DNA of 64,000 bases from Dicyema japonicum (lineage: Eukaryota > Animalia > Dicyemida), in NCBI GenBank assembly GCA_011109175.1, contig RDEW01000015.1:1181481-1245480 (forward strand). Reading direction: 5' to 3'. Positions 4,557 through 62,544 of the stretch are shown one piece after another. Below the pieces are notes generated by a model. It saw only the letters and a list, made by a program, of their open reading frames with translations, was not told the origin of the DNA and did no database searches. Within the stretch, counting starts at the first letter, position 1. Each line of letters opens with the position of its first letter. A program made the translations under genes and the position numbers.

Positions 4557-5480
4557 AAAGTTAATTGAACCAGAACACAATATCCAACCCATTGAAAACT
4601 TTTTAATCGAACTACAACGGAAACTATTAAAGGAGGCTATTCTACCGAGCTGCCACTATTTACCTCGGACAAAAAATTGGGAAGGAAGACATTCACCTTG
4701 AAGTTAAACAAGGTCGGCATCCCTTTCCACAGATGTCAAAGGATCTTGGGTGTGACAATTGATATGCATCTCTGTTTAACACCTCACGTAGAAAACATTC
4801 TATTGAAATGCGAGAAGAAACTGAACGTATTGAAAAGTTTATCGGGAATATGGAAGAGTGGTACTCACCCAGTCTTGATGAACGTATACAAACAATACAT
4901 CGAGCCATGTTTCTCATATGCATGCGCCTCGTGGGGTCCGTCCATATCTTGGACAAATATGAGGAAAATTGAGGAAATGCAAAAGAGGGCTTACAGAGTA
5001 ACGGAACGTTGGATTGGTGAAGATCATCGACCCGGACCTACGCCTCTGGAGGCCCTTATGAGACTTGACTCCAGATCACGGGAAATTGGCCCTGAAAATT
5101 CAGGCAGCCGTCCTGTACGTTCATGCGCGGGCACGAAGGAAGAACGACGGGCAAAGATGAGGTCTTTGTTAAAATGCATCGGGATCACGTGATAATTAGT
5201 TTTGTTTTACCGTGGTCTTGGGTTAAATAAATAAATAAATAAATTAAAGGAGGCTATTCTACCGAGCTGCCCTCTATTCCAAATACCATCGAATTATCTA
5301 CAATCATACAGAAATTTTGAGCCGATGCCATGTCCAATGAGAAGAGCTGTTCAGGATTCTCGACCCCGCTGGACTCGTCCTCACCTTTGTCGGTCTGGGA
5401 TCACTTAGTTAGATGAGAACTTTTATTTCTTTCTCTTTGACCCAGTGATCCTGGAAGTAATAATATAATAATAATATTGA
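4557..5480 (+). mobile_element. LINE family B 3' fragment interrupted by a family A 3' fragment (about 4655-5245)
   Basis: Family B sequence matches 55915-56190. The inserted family A (ORF 4677-5192, RT C-terminus ending GIT*) has a (TAAA)n tail and is flanked by a duplicated taaaggaggctattctaccgagctgcc. Confidence 0.85.
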
Positions 5481-6335
5481 AATGAGAGAAAAAACTGAAC
5501 GTATTGAAAAGTTTATCGGGAATATGAAGAGTGGTCATGGTTCTCCCGCTGTTTACCTGTGCTTAAGTGAATCTCTTCACACTGACATTCAGGGCACTGG
5601 GCAGAGAAGCCGGGTGGTATAGTGGTTAGGCGTCGGGCTAAAGTGACTTAGGTTACTGGTTCGATTCTCGCTGCTGTTCACCTGGTGGAAGGTTCTAGGC
5701 ATCTACGATGCTAAAAGGGTTTGACGAGTGACGCCGTCATCAGTGGATACTCACTGCGGAACTGGATTGTCTAGAAAGGACCCATACACAAGAAAAAGAA
5801 AAAAGAAGTGAAGTTAATTCCTTGGTTCAACGATTAGTTAAAATTAACTGTTCTTTACTTAAATAAAGTGTGTGTCCTGCTTATGCGGAGCTATAAATAT
5901 TATGGCTCTCGTGAAAAGGCTATTATTATTATTATTATTATTATGGAAGAGTAGTACTCACCCAGTCTTGATGAACGTGCACAAACAGTACATCGAGCCA
6001 TGTTTCTCATATGCATGTGCCTCATGGGGACTGTCCATATCTTGGACTAATATGAAGAAAATTGAGGAAATGCAAAAGACGGCTTACAGAGTAACGGAGC
6101 GTTGGATTCGTGAAAATCACCGAGCCGGACCTATGCCTCTGGAGGCCCTTATGAGACTTAACTCTAGATCACGGGAAATTGGCCCTGAAAATTCAGGCAG
6201 CCGTCTGTACGTTCATGCTCGGGCACAAAGAAAGAACACCGGGCAAAATGAGGTCTGTTTTGTTAATGCATCGGGATCACGTGATAATTAGTTTGGTTTT
6301 ACCGTGGTCTTGTGTTAAATAAATAAAAAAATAAA
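5480..6335 (+). mobile_element. LINE family A 3' fragment split by a SINE insertion
   Basis: Matches 4815-5240, 50760-51180 and 52200-52620; ends gggatcacgtga...gtggtcttgtgttaaataaa. Confidence 0.85.
5613..5942 (+). mobile_element. tRNA-derived SINE, subfamily A, full length
   Basis: Box A TGGTATAGTGG, box B GGTTCGATTC, core GACGAGTGACGCCGTCATCAGT, 3' hairpin gagctata-aatat-tatggctc and (TTA)n tail; near-identical copies at 28266-28565 and 51832-52046. Confidence 0.85.
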
Positions 6336-23904: not shown

Positions 23905-25651
23905 ATTTATTTAATAACCTCGAAAAGGGAACACCAAGAAAGAAAGAGTAACCAACTAATTAAGTGATCCCGGTACACCTCAAAAGGATCGAGAGGTTTT
24001 TTGTGTTCTTCCAGAGTACCCACGGCTTTCCTATATCGACGACGATCACCTTCATTAAAATTTGAAGAAAGGTGGGTTTTTTCCCCAATTTACGTGTATT
24101 TGAGGCTTCTAGTTTTGAATGGAAGAAACAACTTGTTCGTGACCATTACAGACCGATAAAACCGGAACTGTTGTTTTTGATTGAAACATGGTCAAGCATT
24201 GGGGGAAAGATCGGGAGGTAGATTCGTTTGACGTACCAATTTGGCCTGTTAGGGAATTGATCTTTACAAATTTGATATTGAAACTCCACAAGCTTATGAG
24301 GCACAAGCATACTCAACCGTCGGTTTTAGAAGTTGATTATACAAGACGACAGCGCACTCCCGTGACGCCTGGACATTAAGAACGATTTTATTATATTTAG
24401 TTTCCTGAGACCCTTTGTCATGACGTTCTTCACATGTTGAGAAAATATCATCAATGTCGGAAAGTCACTCCCAGAATAGTTGGATGAATCTGTAAAGGTA
24501 GAGAATAGTTGGATGAATTTTCCAAATCAGATGAAATTTGTTGATGATTCATCTTCAGTGAGTTTCTTTGCTTAATGAGAAGACGAGGTTCCGAGTCCAG
24601 AGTAGTCATGTAAGATTTGTAAACTGCACGTGGGACAAACAACTTTTCAGCTCGAAAGATTACATAGTTTAGATGGTCCACTGCTTTGTCGATGGAGCAA
24701 AATGAGCTGGGATCAAAATGTAATAGGTTATGGTTAATGAAAAGCTTGAATTGAAATTTCTTTTAGATCTTGAAGGTTGCTTTAATTCTACATGAGTTAT
24801 TGAATCGGATCAGTTTTAATATAATCGGATTATGATAACTATGAAAATCGTAGAAGACGTTCCATGAAATCATCGGGTAATCCTAGAGGAAGCAAAAGAT
24901 ATGTCGGGGAGGTTGGGTTGTCATTTCTTCGTACTGGTGTCCTTATGAGGATGTTCGAGTAATTAAGAATCACCATTTTTTCGAAAGAGTCGATAATTAG
25001 ACTCCCCCTCTTGTCTGCCGACTAAGTACTGAACCATTGGGAATGTTTGGCATTGAAATCTCCACATAGAAACACATTTCGAATTTTTTGTAGTTTGTCG
25101 AGCTTTGGAACATATTTTATTACAACAGGATCCCGGCGGCGGAATGTAAATGTTGAATAGAATAAGATGTTCTGACCCATTAATAAGATCAATAAAAATT
25201 TGTTCTGCGGTCCTGTCGTGTAGAATTAAATCATCCACATGCGAGCTCACATCGTGGAGGATAAACCGTTTTTAATAATGGTAAGTAAGCCGTCACCACG
25301 TCCAATACGGTCTTTTCTGATAAAGATGTATCCAGGAAAAAGGGGTTGTACTTTGTAGAAAGTTTTGACTCCTGGATAAGGCAAATGTCAATCTTGTGCT
25401 TCGATAATAGACATCGTAACTCCAAAATCTTTGTTTTTATACCGTTAGCATTGAGTTGCATAATAACTAGTGGTTTTGGTCAGGTTTTGTTCAATATCTC
25501 CAGAAAGAACTAGAATCCAGAGGAACAAACAACATCTCGAGTTTCCAGCTGAGGTATACCATCCAGGCATACGTGGAGTCTGGATGGGGAAGAGAAAATG
25601 GTTCATTTTGATGTTATTCGACACTGAGCGACCATGAAAGGTGAACCACAT
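23905..25651 (-). mobile_element. LINE family C, internally deleted: 2A-like peptide, APE, late RT, 3' end
   Basis: LVLSGDIEQN(PGP)-KPLVIMQLNANGIKTK..DICLIQESKL, FNIYIPP, then a jump to PTILGVTF and the gggatcacttaa terminus. Confidence 0.8.
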
Positions 25652-26081
25652 GACGCCACGCTAATATTTTTCAAACAAACAGCTATAATTAATGTAATCA
25701 CGTATTATGATTATTGCTTAAATTATTCCAAAGACTAAGGTAAAACCAAACTAATAATTCCTTGATCCTAACAAATTCCAGCAGAATCTTCACTCAAGCA
25801 CAGTGATCCAGAGGACGTTGTTCGGGAGAACTGAAGTCGATTGCAGAACTCGTCGTCAGGGGACGAAGTTTTTTCCCAGTGGAATGTATGGATCCTTTTG
25901 AATGCTGAACAGGAATTTGGACGTTTCCTGAGTAAGATGGATCCATTGAAGCCACCAGAGGGAACGAAGAGAAATCTTCAACAGATAACCGCATGCACCA
26001 CCACCCGACAGTCATTAAAAGCCGTATCAAATTATTCGAGCAAAGATTTGTTAGTCAAAAATTAAATTAATGATTATAAAA

Positions 26082-27650
26082 TTATTTTTTGATTCTGTGC
26101 GTGAATTTTGAAGCTTTACAAGCAATCATTGAGCAAACTTGCCATGTTGTAATAATTAACTCCTGTCCTCAGTCGGTCTCTAAAATAATAAATTTAACGA
26201 TGACAATAGCCAATCAATGGTGAATAGAAGGGCAGCAAAATTCGACCTCAATGTGAATGACTTTAGCATAATTATAACGAGGACAATGCTCGCATTGGGA
26301 ATGGTTGAAGTGCAATGACTGCCAAAGAAATTAGAAATCTTAATATTAAGTAGATATACATTGCTATGACTTATTTGGCTTGGTGAAAGGGGAGTTTTTG
26401 AATGGCTGCACAGAACATGAGCGCACATGTAATGTATGCGGCCGATCCCGAAGCACAAATTGGAACAGACAGAGCCACAGCTGAGCCTGCTTGATTGGAG
26501 TCACACTCAAACTCATTCGTTAAGGCTTCTGATAATTTGGGCACACCACTCAAACTGTATTCAATAGTACATCACAAACCTTGAAGCTGTAGAAATAGAA
26601 ACCAAAAGTCCAGTGAAAAACCCTTCCCATCAAATAGAGTGGATTCCTTCTGGTTACCAAATATATTGTAAGGGGAATGAAAATAAACAGTTGAACAATC
26701 AAGGTGAGCGTCACAGTCAAAGAAAAGTATCCAAGGGAATGAAAGACTGAGTAATATCTGAAGTTTTTGATTATAACTCCAATAATTATCGACATTATTC
26801 CAACCGGCATAAATCAAAATATACATCAAAAGTACAGAAATAACTTTTTGAAGAAATATGTAACAATTTTCTGTATTGCTGTCATAAAATCCAATATTAT
26901 AATAACTTGATCTTTCATGCTGTTAGCGATTAGTCCAAAAAATATGGTAACCACGACAAGTCCTACAAAATCCTCAACTCCCATACCGATAATATTACTT
27001 CCTGGAGTAACCACCAAATCTTTCTTAACCTCCCATTAGTAGAATCTGTATAAACTGTAAGAGTCTATTAATAGTTTTGACATAATACCGATGAGAAAAA
27101 TGCCTCTAACAAATTGTTGGGAATAAGATTTCTTTAATTTAAAAATATTTAATGCCTGAAAAAGTCTGCTAGGAGATCACTGGGAGTCAGACTGGTATCA
27201 GAAACCGTGTCAACATCGGAAGATAAATTAAAAGTATTGCGACCTACATAAATTCAGAGTCAACTTCCCGGTTTTATCAGATAAAAAAATCCAAGAGCAA
27301 TGGAATTCATAATAATGTTGATAAATATGCCATAACTGAGAACAATTCCAATGGTTTTTGTGCTGTCTGCGGGATTCACCGAGGAAATGGCTTGTTGTTA
27401 ATATCATAACTACCCACAAAAATACTTGGAAGAATCAACGGGAGGACTAGCATGTTTAAACAACGTAAGAAAAGTTCTCCCGGGATTCCTATTTTTAGCA
27501 TAAATAGCAACCAATCCAAGTTATTGCATTTTCTGATAAATTGTAGTTTCTTAGCAGAATACCAATACCGAATCCAATCCCAACACAAAGGAATGTGCAC
27601 AGTAATAAGCAATTTAGGCGCAAAATTCGAATTAGCCCAGATCGATTCAT
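26082..27650 (-). CDS. SLC1/EAAT-family (dicarboxylate/amino acid:cation symporter) transporter, divergent; 3' end approximate
   Basis: IPGELFLRCLNMLVLPLI, DFFRNLIPNNLLEA, GLVVVTIFFG, PVGIM, STASS, TIPNAS, IDWLLDRLRTGVN after splicing 21-25 nt introns; several homopolymer indels. Confidence 0.9.
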
Positions 27651-28265
27651 TTTAAAAATATAGTTTATTCCCTTTTATTAAATAAATATTTTATAAACAA
27701 TTTATAATTTTATTAAAAATTATATTTTATTCATGATTTTCACAAAATATTATAAAAAACATAAACTTATGACCTATCGATAGCTAATATGGCTCTTCGT
27801 AAAGTTAAATATTTGGTCATTTACACTGTATAAGATTATAGTCTTCTAAATTTATAAAAAGTTAATCTCAAATTATAATTTTTAAAATAACTAATTATCA
27901 ACTTGTTGTTTTATCATCTATGATTAGCATGAAGTGTCACGTAGTACCTTACCAAAACCATAATATCCTATTATTATCGAACCTAATTATCTGGCATTTC
28001 ATTTATTAACTAAAACCATAATCACGTGTCATTATATAATTTTAAAATGATCTAATATTTCATAAAATTGTGAGTATTGACCAAAAATTAATAAAATATA
28101 TAAGGTTCCTCTAACTATTATTGAAGTCCTTATTGAACAAGGCTGTAGTTCTACCAGTACCGTGTTAGTAATAATAAACTAAGCGGCTCCACCTTGATAA
28201 AGAAAACGTGCTATTGTTTAAGGAAAGTATGTATTCTAAGATCATTAAATCCCAAAAAACACATA

Positions 28266-40609: not shown

Positions 40610-41340
40610 GTCTGGCTTGTTTGGTGTCAGCTTCAAGTCGAGGGAGTGGAGCATGGCTTAGTGCAATACCTTGCCCAAACCTCAGGACCTTTTTGGACGA
40701 CGATTCTTTGAGGATTGGAATCGGACAAAGGCTGGGACTAGACGTTTGCCAGGAGCACCGATGCCGATGCGGGAAAACAGTCGATGTGAAAGGATTGCAC
40801 CCGCTGTCCTGCAGAAGAAGCGCCGGAAGGGGACCACGTCATGCCGCTCTGAATGATGTGATCGTCAGAGCTCTGAAGGCTTCAGGATTCCCAGCACAGC
40901 TTGAACCAGTGGGTCTTGATCGAGGAGATGGGAAGAGACCTGACGGGATGACCCTTTTCCCCTTCACGTCTGGAAGATCTTTGGTCTGGGACGCAACTTG
41001 CATAGACACGTTCTCAAGCACGAACATTTTTAAATCTGTTCAGACACCTGGAGCAGCTGCTTCGACCGCGGAAAACCTAAAAATCAAGAAATATTCTTGC
41101 CTCGGGGATCGCTACCGATTTACTCCTGTTGCGACCGAATCATCGGGAGCCGTTGGTCCAATGACGGCTGAATTCTTGCAAGAACTCGGAGGATTGCTTG
41201 CCAGAAAGAAAAGGGATCAACGAGAAGGGTTATGGCTAAGACAAAAGATTGGAATAGCCATACTCCGAGGGAACTCGTTCGCAATCCACGCAGCAGGCTT
41301 CCTCAACTGATATTTGTTTAATTGTTAAAAAAAAATTTAA
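40610..41340 (+). mobile_element. CRE-clade element 3' fragment with an uninterrupted 229-aa zinc knuckle and RLE ORF
   Basis: CRCGKTVDVKGLHPLSC, RHAALNDVI, KRPDGMT, LVWDATCID, AENLKIKKY, PVATESSG, RGN; A/T tail. Confidence 0.9.
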
Positions 41341-41449
41341 TTAAAAAAAAATAATTAAAATAAATATGTCCTATTTTTTATTTATTTTTTTTGAATTTTA
41401 AAATATTTATTAATGAAAAGATTAATAATGAAAATTAGGCAATAATTAG

Positions 41450-43540
41450 GACGACAGAATGGCGAAGGCGTTACCTCTGATAATTGTCATTTCGACCCTC
41501 TGCCTCAACCAGAGTCCTTCCGTGGCTCGCACCTTTTAGAGGCGAGTTTGCTTCCCTGATGTGGAGAAAGGTTTCCGTCTTCGCGCCTACAGTTCCAGTT
41601 GTCTCCACAGCAATGGGGTGAAATGGTAATGGTCTCCGAGGGATTCGTACTTATGGATCTTCTTGACCTCCGCCTGGTCGGCTGCGTCTCCAGGAAAGAG
41701 CGTCGCCGTCAGCAATCTGGCTCCTGAGAAGGTGTCCACACACGTTGCATCCCAGACAAGTGCTTTTCCAGACAAGTGACTGCTTGGGCCAAGCGACTGC
41801 AGCTCGCAAGGGATGAAAAGTAGGCAGACAGGGCGGCTTCAAGGGAGTATCTCAACCCAATGCCCCATTTCTCATAGGTAGTTTGCACATTGTCCAGCCC
41901 AGATCATCGAATTTGACATTCAGTGTTGATTAGCCGATCGTCTCAGAGTCCCATCAGCCGACAATGGTGCATTCCGGTGTTCAAAACATGGTGAACATCT
42001 CAAAATGTAAATCATCTTCTACACGTAAATACATTTTTTGAGCAAGAAGAAAGACACATGTGGATCTCTTTGTAAAGGCTTCAACTTCATTATTCTTACT
42101 GGTAAGGCAGTTTTCCAGCTCGTCGTTTCCGAGAGGGCATCCAAGGAAATGTACCTTGTCCAAGGAGGATATGCTGAAACTTGGAAGTAGGGATCTGAAT
42201 TCTTGGCAGGCAGTAAAAAGCTTGGAAATGAGCAGGAAATATTGATCAGTTCCGATTTCATAACGTTGACACTTAAACCCAATTCATTTAGAGCTGGAAT
42301 GGTTGAAGAAATATCCTGATATACGTTCTGCCATGGGCCAGCTATCGTAGCGTCGTCCAAGTACCACAGGTTGAGTGCACAGTTTATGCTTCGTGCCACT
42401 GTGTCAATTGTCATTGCAAAAAGCAAAGGCCCTAGAGGGTCTCCCTGCTGAACGCCTGTGCGTGAATAAACGATATCGTTTCCGTAAATAAGGCTGAGTC
42501 CGTCCCATACGATAATGTACAAGTCGGCCAATCTCTGGAGCTCTCTTCTAACAAGTTTCCAAAATACAGTCTCTCCTCAGCGTGTTGAAGGCATTTGATA
42601 TATCAAGCTTCAGGCTAGCCTTTGGGTCTGGGAATTATTGTTGTTGAAGTAACTCCTCGCGGTGTGGACTGCTGCCTCGCAACCGCCGGTCACTCCCACC
42701 CCAAGTTGAGTTGGAAGCAGCTCTTCAGCAACATTGTGGGAGATTCTCCATTTTAGCAGTGAGCCTTCTAAAGTATGTACCGATCGCAATTGGGCGGACA
42801 CTTCAATCTCCTTTTCGGAATGCCAATAGATGTCCACAAAAAGGTCTCTAGAAAATTTTGAAATATCACCATTAACTATTCGATGAGTGAACAGCAAGGT
42901 GATAGACGTTAACAAGGCACGGCCGGCTTCAGCAGTAGCTTCAGAGGTTAAGTTTTTTATATGGCTTGGGCGCAGTCCGTCCAGGCCTCCGCAGCTACTG
43001 GGTGCAAAAGACTTTATTTTACGCACTACTTCAAATTCCGTGGGAGTAAATGCCGGGAGGTCTTCTGGCATTGTCAAGTTCCGCTGGCACGGCTTCAACA
43101 GCGTTTCGTCACAAGACACTACTCTTACAGCTGCGCGAACGTCCTCTTTTATTAGTTTTCGGTTCACCCTTTCTCGAAATGCTTTGGAATCTTCCTGTTT
43201 ACTCCCAGCTTCTGTAGACAACTGTTTGCACCGAAATACTTGCTTAGGCTCGATTCCAGAGTCTTGCTGCGTTGAAGTGGCCAAAAAGGGCAGAAGTATT
43301 CTTCTTAATTTTTGAGGCCAGTGATCCGTTGCGAGCTTGCTTTGAGGCAGAAATTCCAAAGGTCATAAATGCAAACCTCAGTAGACGTATCCAAGAGGCC
43401 TTGTCGCTGGTGCTGATGGATTTATCAATTAATGACGTGAGGCATTCAGCAGTGGAAATTCGAGCGGCCTTTGGTATTCTCAGTGGATTCCGTCTACCTT
43501 TCCGACTCTCCGATAGGCGTAACATTTTAGGACAATTTTA
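41450..43540 (-). mobile_element. CRE-clade element with RT domain, internally deleted
   Basis: RIPKAARIS, GGLDGLRPSHIKNL, QLGVGVTGGCEAAVH, KLDISNAFN, GVQQGDPLGPLLF, WYLDDATI, LVWDATCVDT. Confidence 0.9.
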
Positions 43541-49329: not shown

Positions 49330-51180
49330 GGCTCTCAGCTAGACATAACTGGAATTAAAAGAAAAATCAGGGAACTCCGCTCACTCCTGGCTTGTCAAAA
49401 GATTAATGTTGCGATGATTCAAGAGACCAAACTCTCTTTTAATGACCCTACCCTTACATTTCCAGGATACAAAGCAATCAGAAAGGACATAGAGAAAAAA
49501 GAGGCGGAGGACTGCTCACTCTATTCAAAAAGAACTTGAAATCAGAGACATCTCCTCGGAAGTGAGGAAACTTGTTGAGGATGATGATTTAGCAGAAATA
49601 ATTGGAATCTCGCTCGGGAAAACGGAAGGAAGACTATGCCTTGCGAATATCTACGTTCTGCTTACTGGTTCCTGCCCAAAGAGCTATGTTATGCCAAACC
49701 TATCAAGACTTTTTTCCTTCGATGAGATCAGCATCTGCGGGGATTTGAATGCGAAGCATCCCTTATGGCTATCAACTCAACTAGCTGACATGAGAGGGAA
49801 ACTATTATCTCAAACGGACTCCTTAACTATATTGAATGATCCATCGAGAAAATAAATAAGGACACCACTGAGAGAGACAGATAAACCTACCTCACCGGAC
49901 GCAACACTCTGTTCATCGTCGCTTTCATCAAAAATTGATTGGTCAGTCCTCTACGAACAAGAAGCGACCATAATCCAACTGTGGTGAAGATCAAAAGAGA
50001 GGCCAACGTGAGGGGAATTCCTAGCAGCTACAATTACAAAGGTGCTAACTGGAAATTGTATCGCAAAATCTCAGAAGATAAATTGAAGAATTGTTACTTG
50101 GATAGCTTCAGTTTTCTAGAGAATGCCATCAGCTACTTTACCCAAATAATCTTGAAAGCAGGATCAAGGGCTATACTTAAACATTAGTCTTATGTTCCAT
50201 TAACAAGGCCTTTGATTCTATTTCGAGAAAAATATTATCAAAGAAAATTTTCCAGTCTGAGATCCCGGGGAAGCTTAAACTTTGGATAACAAATTTCTTA
50301 AGTGAACGGAGGGGACGTGTATGCCTCGGAGGACTGAAATCAGTCTCGCGTCTTCTCCCAAACGGTGTCCCCAAGGATCTCCTTTATCTCCCGCTTTATT
50401 CAATTTATACCTGACCGACCTCCCGCCACCGGAATCCAATAACGATGTTCTACTCTCATATGCTGACGACATTGTTTTGGCTTCGCGTGATCGGGATATC
50501 CAAAATGCTACAGAAAGATTACAAATTAACCTGGACCGACTCAACGCCTGAGTAATGAAGAACCGACTCACGGTAAATTCCAGAAAGTCGGTCACGTCTA
50601 TGTTTACTTCGGACAAAAGGTTGGGGAAGAAGACTGTCACCTTAAAATTGGACAACGTTGAAATCCCCTTCAGCAAATGTAAGAAGATCTTGGGCGTGAC
50701 ATTGGATACCAACTTATGTTTGTTGCCACACGTGGCAAACATTGTTCTGAAGTGCGAGAAGAAAATCAATGTATTGAAATGTTTATCTGGAATATGGAAG
50801 ACCGGTACCCACCCGGTCTTGATGAATATCTACAAACAATACATTGAACCATGGTTCTCGTACGCGTGTGCTTTGTGGGGACCTTCATTATTATGGACGA
50901 ATACCAAGAAAATCGAGGACGTACAAAAGAAGGCCTTCAGAGTCACGGAGCGGTGGACTTGTGGGAGACACAGAACCGGACCGACTACTCTGGAGGCCCT
51001 CATAAAACTAATCACCGGCATTCGGGAAAATGGCCCTGCAAATACAGTCAGCCGCCCAGTACGAGCTTGTGTGGGCACGAGGGAAGAGCACCGGGAAAGG
51101 ATGAGAATTTTGGTGGAACGCATCGGGATCACGTGATAGTTAGTTTGGTTTTACCGTGGTCTTGGATGTTAAACAATAAT
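49330..51180 (+). mobile_element. LINE family A (I/Jockey-like): APE, partial RT and 3' end; N-terminal RT blocks deleted
   Basis: QLDITGIKRK, MIQETKL, CGDLNAKHPLW, SPDAT, SDHNP; jump at about 50180 to NKAFDSI, GCPQGSPLSPALFNLY, SYADDIVL, ILGVTLD, ERIGIT*. Confidence 0.9.
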
Positions 51181-55129: not shown

Positions 55130-56195
55130 TTGGGTTCCTGGATTTATTAACAGGCAACCAGATACAAGGATATCACCATTGTAAGTTCATCAAGACTCTA
55201 CCATCTCGCATTCCTCCCCAGGACCCCAAAAATCGTTGTATGTGATGAAAATAGACAAATATCAATGATGATCATGTTGTGGTAAGAGGGTAGGTCAAAT
55301 CTGACATTTCAGCTAATCAACGATGCGATGGAAGGTGAGCACATCGAAAGGTCATGGGACGTGTTTGATTCCCAGGACGAGTTCCATTTCTAGTGTGTTG
55401 ATTAGAAATGGAACTCGTAATGAAAACTGTCTAATCCTCTCCTATGCCGACGATATCATTCTTGCCTCCAAAGACAGAAGCATTCAATCAGCGACTCAGT
55501 CCGCTCAACAAATGCTCGACAAGCTGGAACTATGGCTCTCGAAGCGGAGACTCGACACATCAGCAGCAAAGTCTTCTGTCACGCTGTTTACCACTTACAA
55601 AAGACAGCTCTGTATCGAACCAAAAATCTTTATGAAGAACGAGGCTATTTCTATTAACAAAACACCGAAGATTCTGGGAGTAACCTTTGATCAGGGACTC
55701 ACCTTTATCCGGCATGTTGAGAACAAAGTAACTTCTGCTCTGAAGAAAATGAGAATTTTAAAAGTGCTCTCAAAAACACTTAGAGACCAAACTGGTGGCC
55801 TTGTCACGATTTATGAACAATTTATCCGACCAACGATGACGTATGCAAGTTTTTCGTGGGCAATGCAGATTTCACGATCTTCCTCATTGAAACTATCCGC
55901 AATCGAGGAGACTGCAATAAGGATAATTGGACCAGAACACAAAATCCAACCCATTGAAAATTTCTTAATCGAATTACAACGGAAACTCTTAAAGGAGGCT
56001 ATTTTACCGAGCTGCCCTCTATTCCATACACTATCGAATTATCTACAATCATACAGAAATTTTAAGCCGATGCCATGTCCAATGAAAAGAGCTGTTCAGG
56101 ATTCTTGACCCCGCCGGTCTGGGATCACTTAGTTAGATGAGAACTTTTATTTCTTTCTCTTTGACCCAGTGATCCTGGGGGTAATAATAATAATG
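55130..56195 (+). mobile_element. LINE family B: 5' remnant, late RT and 3' end
   Basis: ORF 55323-56108 LSYADDIIL, PKILGVTFD, YEQFIRPTMTYA; terminus gggatcacttag...gtgatcc and (TAA)n. Confidence 0.85.
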
Positions 56196-57999: not shown

Positions 58000-58885
58000 C
58001 TAATTATTTTTGATAATTCTTTTAATTTCTTAAGTGGACGATGAGGGAAAGTGTGCGTCTGAAATAAGAGATTCAGATCGAGATTGTTACACAATGATGT
58101 ACCCCAGGGATCTCCTTTGTCATCAATACTCTTTAATTTGTTTCTGAATGATCTCCCCGTTCCTATGAATAATAATAACATGCTACTTTCCTATGCCAAT
58201 GACATAGCTGTCGCATCTATGGACGTAAATGTCGAACATGCTAAAGAAAGACTACAAGGAATACTAAATAACATATATGGATGGTTGTGCGAAAATCGAT
58301 TAAGTGCATGTTCCGGAAAGTCAGCAGTCACTCTATTCACTAAGAATAGAAAGATGGGAACGCAAACAATTGATGTCACGTTAAATGAAATACCTCTACC
58401 ACAAAAGAAATCGCAGAAGATACTGGGAGTAACTTTTGATACTTTCCTCTTCTTCTCAGCCCATGTGGAATCCATAATATCAACCTGTGCAAAGAAGATC
58501 AATTTTATAAAGCCTTCCTTTGGAATTGTGGTGGAATTTATCCGCCAGGTGTCGGGACCCTCTATAAGCAGTATATCGAGCCAACAATAGGCTATGCATG
58601 TGCTACGTGGGAATTTAACCTTGCGGCAACGAACCTAATAAAAATTCAAGAGATCCAGTCAAAACAATAAATTTACTGGAGAAATATACGGATAAAGAAA
58701 TTGCCCCCAGAACACTTGAGTCTATCTTGGAGGCAATTTCAGAAGAGGTGTGAAAAAAGACCCCCGTCCGTATAGAAAATGTGAGGGGTCACGGTCGGAG
58801 CATCGAGAAAAAATGGCCCGATTATTGAGATGCCGGGACCACATGAATAATTATTTAGTGATTAAGACGGTTTCTTTGGTTAAAT
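58000..58885 (+). mobile_element. LINE family I, RT and 3' end
   Basis: DVPQGSPLSSILFNLF, LSYANDIA, KILGVTFD; ends ggg acc aca tga followed by ggtttc and ggttaaataataa. Confidence 0.8.
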
Positions 58886-61027: not shown

Positions 61028-62544
61028 ATGCTTAGATCGAACTTATTTCTTGGTAGATTTTTCTTACTTTCGTCCGAAATTCCTGGCAAAATCATTATCA
61101 GAATCAAATCTGACAAAATCCAAGTCTTAAAACCAATCAACAAAAAATTTACTCTCAAAGAAGGATGATGATCAATTCGAAGATAACTTAAATGTCTATC
61201 GCGAAAAATCTGAAATGAGAAATTACTTTATTGAAATAATCAAAAGAACACAAAATACTGCCATGAATGCCCATAAGGACCTGTCTCTCAGTGAGATCGA
61301 GAAATATTTCCACCAACTGAAGGCTGAGGGTAACTGTGGATCACATTGCAGAGGAAACCATTGCCAGATATAACAAACAGTATATGAGAGCAGAGAGAAA
61401 TTAGCCAAAATGATGGATACGGATCCCGCCGATTTCACGGACAAAGAGGTCGAGGTATTTGGAGACTAAAATCCAGCGGGCCATCGAATACTTGCTCCAT
61501 CATCTCTCACAGCCAAGGAAGCTCGGCCGACCATCAATGTACTCTTTGGCTTATTTTAGCTTCCAAATAATATTTTAGACAAAATGAAGGTTAACCCACG
61601 TGTTATTTGCAGTTACTAGATTCGACGATAAAGGTCGTCCGTTGAACTTCCTTTTCTACACAGGACATTCCGAATTCTACTCAATAATGCACGTTCTATA
61701 TTTATTTATTCATTTAGGAAATTGCTATACACGTGGACAATTTGAACGAATTATCTGAATCAAAGTCCCCGGATGCAGAAAAATTGTAATTTCCTTATAA
61801 AATTACAGCGACATGACTGACTTTAGATGGCTTACTCCCAATGAAATAAGGAAAATGTTAAGTGACAAAACCTTGACAGACGAAATGGTAAATATGAATG
61901 AAACTTAGGTTTAGTGCATAAATCTCACAAATTCAGTCAAAATTCTCTCAGAGATGGACTATTCTAACAAATGTTGTGACTTTATTAGATCGTTCTGTGA
62001 CAAAATGAAGTCTGTTTCTTACGAGAAAGATATTTCCGAGGTTTTTAGTCTATTCCACCAGATTATGCCGGACGCCGATGGAATTAAATACGTAAAGGCT
62101 GAGGGGTTTAGGAAGAGTGCTAAGGCCAGCGTGATTCTGAAATCACCGGGAACGGGACTTTTAACAGTGAACGGACAGAGCATCCTGTATTTTAAATCTG
62201 TAATCGACCGGTTTTTGTTTTTTTTGTTTAAAGCAAGCCATCAGCTTTTGGGGCCTCTCTGTCTGACCAATATTGTTAATAAAGTGGATATTTCTGGTAA
62301 TGTGAAAAGTGGGGGAAACTCCTCCCAGGCAGGAGCACTAAGATTGGCCATAGCAAGGGCTCTTTCATACATTCTGAGTCCTGAGGACGTTGAGAAGATG
62401 AGACAGGGTTTATATGAGAGTTATTTTAGCCGGATACTTGACACGTGATCCAAGAGTAAAGGAGAGAAAGAAACCTGGGAAGGAAGGAGCCAGGAGAGGA
62501 TACAAATGGTGACCTTGTTTGTTCATTTTAGGCTTAAACGATGA
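61028..62544 (+). CDS. MRPS9: Mitochondrial ribosomal protein S9 (metazoan type with N-terminal extension)
   Basis: [95 protein letters not shown]. Confidence 0.92.

Follow-up and report, generated by a model that had tools for sequence, protein, structure and literature searches.

The closest described relatives of the gene analysed here are the archaeal, Na+-coupled GltPh and GltTk, the animal EAAT/ASCT transporters (SLC1A1-7, with structures for EAAT1, EAAT3, and ASCT2), and the bacterial, H+-coupled GltP and DctA. In GltPh numbering, Na1 is composed of the D405 side chain and the carbonyls of G306, N310, and N401; Na3 is composed of the side chains of T92, S93, N310, and D312 and the Y89 carbonyl, and Na2 is built mostly from main-chain carbonyls (PMC5110648). 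In canonical members the NMD loop turns inward once Na+ occupies Na1 and Na3, and the substrate site is formed in this way (PMC5110648; PMC12668577); sodium at these two sites plays this part in all EAAT, ASCT, and GltPh-type transporters studied. A Na+ signature ([S/T]92-93, N310, [M/S]311, [D/E]312, and [D/E]405) and an H+ signature (a hydrophobic residue at 92, L311, and N405) have been defined (PMC12668577).

Loss of sodium dependence in this family has been addressed only recently, and only in bacteria, where a reconstructed ancestor needs neither Na+ nor H+ to bind and exchange aspartate, and where only 16% of its present-day descendants keep all Na+-binding residues (PMC12668577). The bacterial Ext-Int clade, defined in Firmicutes/Bacillota, has been proposed to bind substrate without ions (PMC12668577). 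In addition, some working proteins of the wider family depart from the NMDGT motif. The TM7 motif is G-Q-N-G-C in E. coli TcyP (YdjN) and N-M-A-G-A in SstT; TcyP is annotated as a cation symporter and SstT as a Na+ symporter despite these motifs. Our literature search found no animal SLC1 member without the NMD motif, and to our knowledge none has been described.

Here we analyse a gene of this family in the dicyemid Dicyema japonicum, located in a 64-kb stretch of DNA (hereafter the window), in which the sodium-site side chains are replaced and most of the substrate pocket is kept.

Gene Structure and Family Membership

The SLC1/SDF-family gene lies on the minus strand at 27650-26074 and consists of 11 exons separated by ten introns of 21-25 nt. 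The features of the gene are as follows.

Whole SLC1/SDF gene: 26074..27650, minus strand; ATG 27650-27648, TAA 26076-26074; product of about 432-447 aa, depending on the treatment of two spots
Exon 1: 27512..27650, minus strand; short N-terminus and TM1; zero listed read differences
Exon 2: 27414..27488, minus strand; TM2, I-P-G-E-L-F-L-R-C-L-N-M-L-V-L-P-L-I; top PDB matches human EAAT1 and ASCT2
Exon 3: 27265..27390, minus strand; TM3, with Y-G-I-F-I-N at 27334-27317; GltPh 92 is Ile and 93 is Asn
Exon 4: 27156..27243, minus strand; TM3-TM4 loop, C-terminal end D-F-F-R
Intron 4: 27132..27155, minus strand; 24 nt, GC...AG in the window letters
Exon 5: 27089..27131, minus strand; placed by the gene model
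Exon 6: 26987..27064, minus strand; 5' part uncertain
Exon 7: 26836..26962, minus strand; TM4c
Intron 7: 26815..26835, minus strand; 21 nt, GT...TG in the window letters, two in-frame TGA codons inside
Exon 8: 26580..26814, minus strand; TM5, TM6, and HP1, with S-T-A-S-S at 26593-26580 and 26554
Exon 9: 26360..26554, minus strand; TM7, with C-A-S-G-S at 26457-26443; read corrections at 26394 (+T) and 26371 (-1)
Exon 10: 26205..26338, minus strand; HP2 tip A-L-P-T-I-P-N-A-S and start of TM8; read correction at 26306 (+G); top PDB matches EAAT3 and EAAT1
Exon 11: 26074..26179, minus strand; TM8, DRLRTGVNYYNM (D-R-L-R-T-G-V-N-Y-Y-N-M) at 26178-26143, short tail, and stop; read corrections at 26139, 26100, and 26085

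All ten introns are typical in size and nine have usable ends; at least one is not of the GT-AG type under every insertion scenario considered below. Removal of intron 4 joins D-F-F-R to N-L-I-P-N-N-L-L-E-A, a junction that resembles an EAAT motif, and one unlisted T inserted in the reads could turn this intron into GT...AG. With intron 7 removed, the product fits the family HMM without gaps around the P-V-G motif. If a single A were inserted, this intron would have 22 nt and GT...AG ends, and one of the unplaced read insertions could serve for this. The two TGA codons within 26835-26815 were also considered as Trp codons, a reading rejected in view of the gapless fit obtained by excising the 21 nt, and no GT/GC-AG intron that spans them without an indel exists there. 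On the 5' side of exon 6, either a 24-nt intron (27088-27065) is combined with an extra A near 27030, or there is one 59-nt intron (27088-27030); the two versions score 85.5 against 86.9 bits with the four-member HMM described next.

A word search with E. coli GltP and a scan of genome contigs by GltP alignment returned enterobacterial GltP only, and therefore four E. coli paralogues (GltP, DctA, SstT, and TcyP) were used to build the HMM. The spliced product scores 85.5 bits against it (E 3e-25), compared with at most 6.2 bits among 2000 shuffles, and HMM positions 24-418 align with product residues 25-439. Four exon ORFs match the Pfam SDF family PF00375 in colinear order (profile positions 23-58, 181-242, 260-311, and 325-367), and the product aligns with E. 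coli GltP end to end at an overall identity of 19%. The identity to TcyP (a cystine carrier) and SstT (a Ser/Thr carrier), which have other substrates and other TM8 motifs, is about 19-20%. The assignment to SLC1/EAAT made in an earlier note on this DNA thus stands.

The best PDB matches of the TM2 exon and the HP2/TM8 exon are, between them, human EAAT1, EAAT3, and ASCT2, without gaps, which suggests that the gene descends from animal EAAT/ASCT-type SLC1 transporters. The same matches argue for an animal origin, and for convergence with the bacterial Ext-Int clade. The dicyemid protein has the same TM1-8, HP1, and HP2 order as the animal transporters, with very short tails and a much shorter TM3-TM4 loop insertion. 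Searched by phmmer against the PDB, the TM7 exon alone gave zero matches even at E 10, and when its read-confirmed 53-aa translation was run with HMMER against 1.84 billion representatives, seven weak multi-stretch matches came out and no strong full-length relative. Neither a word search with an 86-aa ORF nor the ESM Atlas gave a usable match, and the exon-1 ORF was not found in public assemblies by exact look-up; no orthologue or paralogue emerged. As a control, a 164-aa ORF of the window was submitted to the word search at E 0.001 and matched nothing, itself included. The protein databases therefore seem to lack Dicyema japonicum, and negative results on orthologues and expression from them carry no weight.

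Read Support and Assembly Errors

The raw window is frame-broken at 26764, 26616, 26394, 26371, 26306, 26139, and 26100. Its pseudogene-like look probably comes from single-base assembly differences, and the gene becomes readable only after correction. Window positions 25900-27750 were compared with short-read contigs of four runs, all made on a single sample. The contigs of all four runs show the same 19 single-letter gaps against these 1.85 kb of the window, with very few substitutions. The gaps are densest in 25969-26400, and the listed ones lie mostly in or beside homopolymer runs. All frame breaks named in the read listing are assembly differences, and the gene keeps its introns. Once the 12 listed read differences are put in, the frame runs uninterrupted from 26554 to its TAA at 26076-26074, and the 26616 break is gone.

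Eight further read differences have no listed position. By the length bookkeeping of the contigs (an X4 contig of 1054 letters against 1054 with 4 gaps, and an X1 contig of net +1 with 5 gaps), exactly two unlisted differences fall in 26587-27580, both of them single-base insertions. In exon 8, where the reads lack a single base at each of 26764 and 26616, the frame would be restored by a single-base insertion before about 26705, so that one of the two unlisted insertions would have to act downstream of the 26764 deletion. The other can be the A near 27030, or can convert the GT...TG intron at 26835-26815 or the GC...AG intron at 27155-27132 to GT...AG. The two insertions should suffice for the remaining frame, and the product would be uninterrupted, at about 432-447 aa, in every scenario. 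As other repairs of exon 8, a 35-nt intron at 26616 would remove the conserved V-T-R-R-N-P, and the reads show a one-base deletion there instead; a 19-nt intron after 26764 yields the wrong frame. A further three or so unlisted gap letters (at most three) fall within 25969-26389, and probably past the stop codon, since the corrected frame already matches homologues without gaps.

For the central residue change, another X4 contig is identical to the window over 26426-26586, which includes the CASGS codons at 26443-26457. CASGS is therefore no assembly error, and the question raised in the earlier note, whether reads would show NMDG, is answered in favour of CASGS. Among the runs that contain the locus, none is recorded as RNA, and the contigs are unspliced and without splice joints.

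The gaps between window and reads look like long-read assembly errors. The published Dicyema japonicum assembly was obtained by merging an Illumina assembly with a PacBio RS II assembly (PMC6736024), and a merged, unpolished-looking PacBio RS II assembly would explain the gap pattern. With many single-base errors in parts of this genome assembly, an apparent frameshift, in-frame stop, or unusual splice end should first be checked against reads, and those elsewhere in the genome may have the same origin. Other GT-TG introns also call for caution, since one inserted A would normalise the intron at 26815-26835.

One further contig was seen in the X1 run. It is 156 letters long, has about one quarter of the local depth, and differs in 6 places from the 72 letters of 26825-26896 that it matches. 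An allele, a second and diverged copy of the exon, or a faulty contig may account for it.

Genomic Setting

At 37% G+C, and with many LINE fragments and tiny introns, the window fits what has been described for the Dicyema japonicum genome, namely 36.7% G+C, 49% repeats, and the smallest introns among the spiralian genomes compared (PMC6736024). By eye, translations of reverse-transcriptase-like LINE fragments were recognised on both strands (4677-5192, 5872-6291, 40621-43359, 50555-51136, 55323-56108, and 58084-58590), and the many LINE-type ORF fragments fit a repeat-rich genome. The sequence directly 3' of the transporter gene (25938-25981 and 25445-26030) is a repeat that recurs in numerous contigs of far greater depth. 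Next to it lie the LINE endonuclease ORFs at 25231-25461 and the stretch 25445-25651, and the 3' end of the transporter gene abuts the element. The 164-aa ORF used as a control above (61954-62448, plus strand) carries what looks like a ribosomal-protein uS9-like motif. No canonical SLC1 paralogue was seen within the 64-kb window.

Replacement of the Sodium-Site Residues

Residues were mapped from the product to E. coli GltP and from there to GltTk/GltPh numbering, and the GltTk numbering agrees with the published site description (PMC5110648). The cation-site positions read as follows.

GltPh 92 (Na3): I in the dicyemid protein
GltPh 93 (Na3): N in the dicyemid protein
GltPh 310 (Na1 and Na3): C in the dicyemid protein
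GltPh 311 (Na2): A in the dicyemid protein
GltPh 312 (Na3): S in the dicyemid protein
GltPh 405 (Na1): M in the dicyemid protein

Alignments by phmmer, MAFFT, and the HMM concur on all three regions concerned. CASGS pairs with N-L-D-G-S of GltP (NMDGT of GltTk), and thus the replacement of NMDGT by CASGS without an indel is as the earlier note described it, with the codons at 26457-26443 on the minus strand rather than at 26446-26457. The note's claim that the TM8 Asp equivalent to GltPh D405 is absent is likewise borne out, as a Met occupies this position (GltP N401, GltTk D409). In TM3, where YYMTTT had been aligned with YGIFIN, the motif is present at 27334-27317 and position 92 is Ile; however, an Asn stands in the place of S93, so that this Na3 position carries another residue but is still polar.

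The side-chain ligands of Na1 and Na3, as known from GltPh, GltTk, and the EAATs, are thus all replaced in the alignments. The dicyemid protein agrees with the Na+ signature at 0 of 6 positions and with the H+ signature at 1 of 3 (I92 fits, whereas 311 is A and 405 is M). Where animal EAAT/ASCT proteins have NMDGT, the Na1 Asp of TM8, and T/T or T/S in TM3, it has CASGS, Met, and I/N. GltP and DctA also lack the Na1 Asp (N in GltP) and share the hydrophobic residue at 92, but they keep N310 and D312 (N-L-D-G), both absent from the dicyemid protein, which also lacks L311 and N405. Further changes are found in TM7. The conserved TM7b motif F-I-A-Q is F-C-A-A, and the position of GltP Q320, next after the TM7 Tyr and the place of the proton-carrying Glu of EAATs, is Ile.

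It is worth noting that loss of the NMD motif would not by itself prove loss of ion coupling, because TcyP and SstT, which are working relatives, also lack it.

Substrate Pocket and HP2 Gate

As the substrate-contact list we take nine aspartate-contact positions of GltPh. Eight of these are identical to GltP and the ninth is conservative, against an overall identity of 19%. The residues kept include T-A-S-S of HP1, Ser at T314, D394, R397, T398, and N401. The serine-rich HP1 tip, S-T-A-S-S, is identical to that of E. coli GltP; Ser in the places of T314 and of G359 is likewise shared with GltP. D-R-L-R-T-G-V-N of TM8 aligns with GltP D390 to N397 and preserves the D-x-x-R-T-x-x-N motif. D394, R397, T398, N401, and the HP1 serines are also common to GltPh and GltTk, whose Na1 (D405) and Na3 (T92, S93, N310, and D312) side-chain ligands are the ones replaced. 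The TM8 Arg (GltPh R397) is present as in acidic amino-acid carriers.

The earlier note had called the substrate residues intact. This holds for STASS and the four TM8 residues, but not for the HP2 tip, which reads A-L-P-T-I-P-N-A-S against G-I-A-G-V-P-G-V-S in GltP: all glycines are lost, and only the central Pro and last Ser are retained. The glycine-free tip, which also sets the protein apart from animal EAAT/ASCT transporters, means that the substrate site is not fully intact, and together with the M311 to Ala change it could impair gating or substrate binding. Overall, the loss is selective, with the cation sites changed and the substrate pocket kept, since eight of nine substrate positions match GltP and none of the six Na+-signature positions is conserved.

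Ion Coupling and Alternative Explanations

The gene is a real and probably intact gene of an animal with tiny introns. Its compact product of about 440 aa is predicted to keep the elevator-type fold and the acidic amino-acid pocket. With NMD changed to CAS, positions 92/93 to I/N, and the TM8 Asp to Met, no known Na+-driven forming of the substrate site would be available. The protein would instead adopt its substrate-binding shape without Na+, the former ion cavities might be filled by the polar uncharged C310, S312, N93, and N404 together with water, and Asp/Glu-like substrates would be moved by an uncoupled carrier or exchanger, as proposed for the bacterial uncoupled clade. We tentatively favour this reading, namely an EAAT-derived carrier or exchanger of acidic amino acids that is uncoupled and no longer uses Na1 and Na3, while regarding the chances as falling slightly on the other side. 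It is drawn by analogy with the bacterial ancestor that works without Na+ or H+, and in so doing we infer the intactness of the gene at the two unplaced insertions, its expression, its substrate, and the absence of ion coupling. In the Ext-Int/Anc-Int uncoupled clade (PDB 9bgy/9bgz), the aspartate pocket is kept and the Na+-binding residues are not conserved (PMC12668577), as in the dicyemid protein, and the likeness to this bacterial clade would be convergent. By contrast, Anc-Int itself retains NMDG and the TM8 Asp, and the two coupling-switch positions of the bacterial study are D (295, by hand alignment) and A (327) in the dicyemid protein; neither switch state is thus present, which we count against the uncoupled reading. 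A facilitator, exchanger, sensor, or anion-channel function, as put forward in the earlier note, is what one may infer from the residues. Its argument that a Na+-uncoupled carrier would suit an endoparasite is weak, because host fluid is expected to be Na+-rich.

Coupling might have been retained through other ligands, which we consider improbable; the ion would be H+, or else Na+ bound to the backbone-built Na2 or to a site rebuilt from N93, S312, C310, and N404. Such coupling would be in line with Ile at position 92, as in the H+-coupled signature, and with the cation-symporter annotations of TcyP (G-Q-N-G-C) and SstT (N-M-A-G-A); host renal fluid, moreover, is said to be acidic. Since Na2 consists mostly of main-chain carbonyls, its loss would be invisible from sequence alone. 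However, the L311 and N405 of the H+ signature are A and M here, the place of GltP Q320 is taken by Ile, the Na2 ligand M311 is Ala, and the former cation cavity has no acidic residue. It is also possible, at a similarly low probability, that the gene is dead or dying, with constraint relaxed in a reduced parasite and the motifs drifting while the frame is not yet broken, or is broken at an unlisted place. The lack of an RNA run among those containing the locus, the two to five unplaced read differences, the LINE adjoining the 3' end, and a TM7 exon too diverged to find SLC1 proteins by itself would all be compatible with such decay. Against it, about 440 codons are open after read correction in DNA of 63% A+T, where about 7% of random codons would be stops (estimated from composition), all ten introns keep a typical size, and nine keep usable ends. 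The drift is also uneven, with eight of nine substrate positions and D-x-x-R-T-x-x-N kept and 6 of 6 Na positions changed, a pattern that free decay does not predict.

A role other than transport seems very unlikely, whether as an anion channel (substrate-gated or constitutive), as a sensor of ligands, or as the partner of a canonical paralogue in a trimer. A kept pocket with lost coupling machinery would agree with it, and the rigid-looking, glycine-free HP2 tip might lock the gate in one state. Anion conductance is an established second activity of EAATs, but it itself depends on Na+ binding, and a canonical partner is missing from the 64-kb window.

Implications

On a bolder reading, which is on balance unlikely, the dicyemid protein would be the first animal SLC1 member to have naturally shed the NMD motif and all Na1/Na3 side-chain ligands while still a working carrier. 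It would then be a parallel among eukaryotes, of separate evolutionary origin, to the uncoupled glutamate transporters of bacteria, and would show which residues are able to replace bound sodium ions in an EAAT-type scaffold. A protein derived from EAATs in which the pocket persists and the ion sites have been replaced would offer an animal test case for an ion-free high-affinity state and for anion conductance, and would bear on the uptake or exchange of acidic amino acids by a parasite that has no gut.
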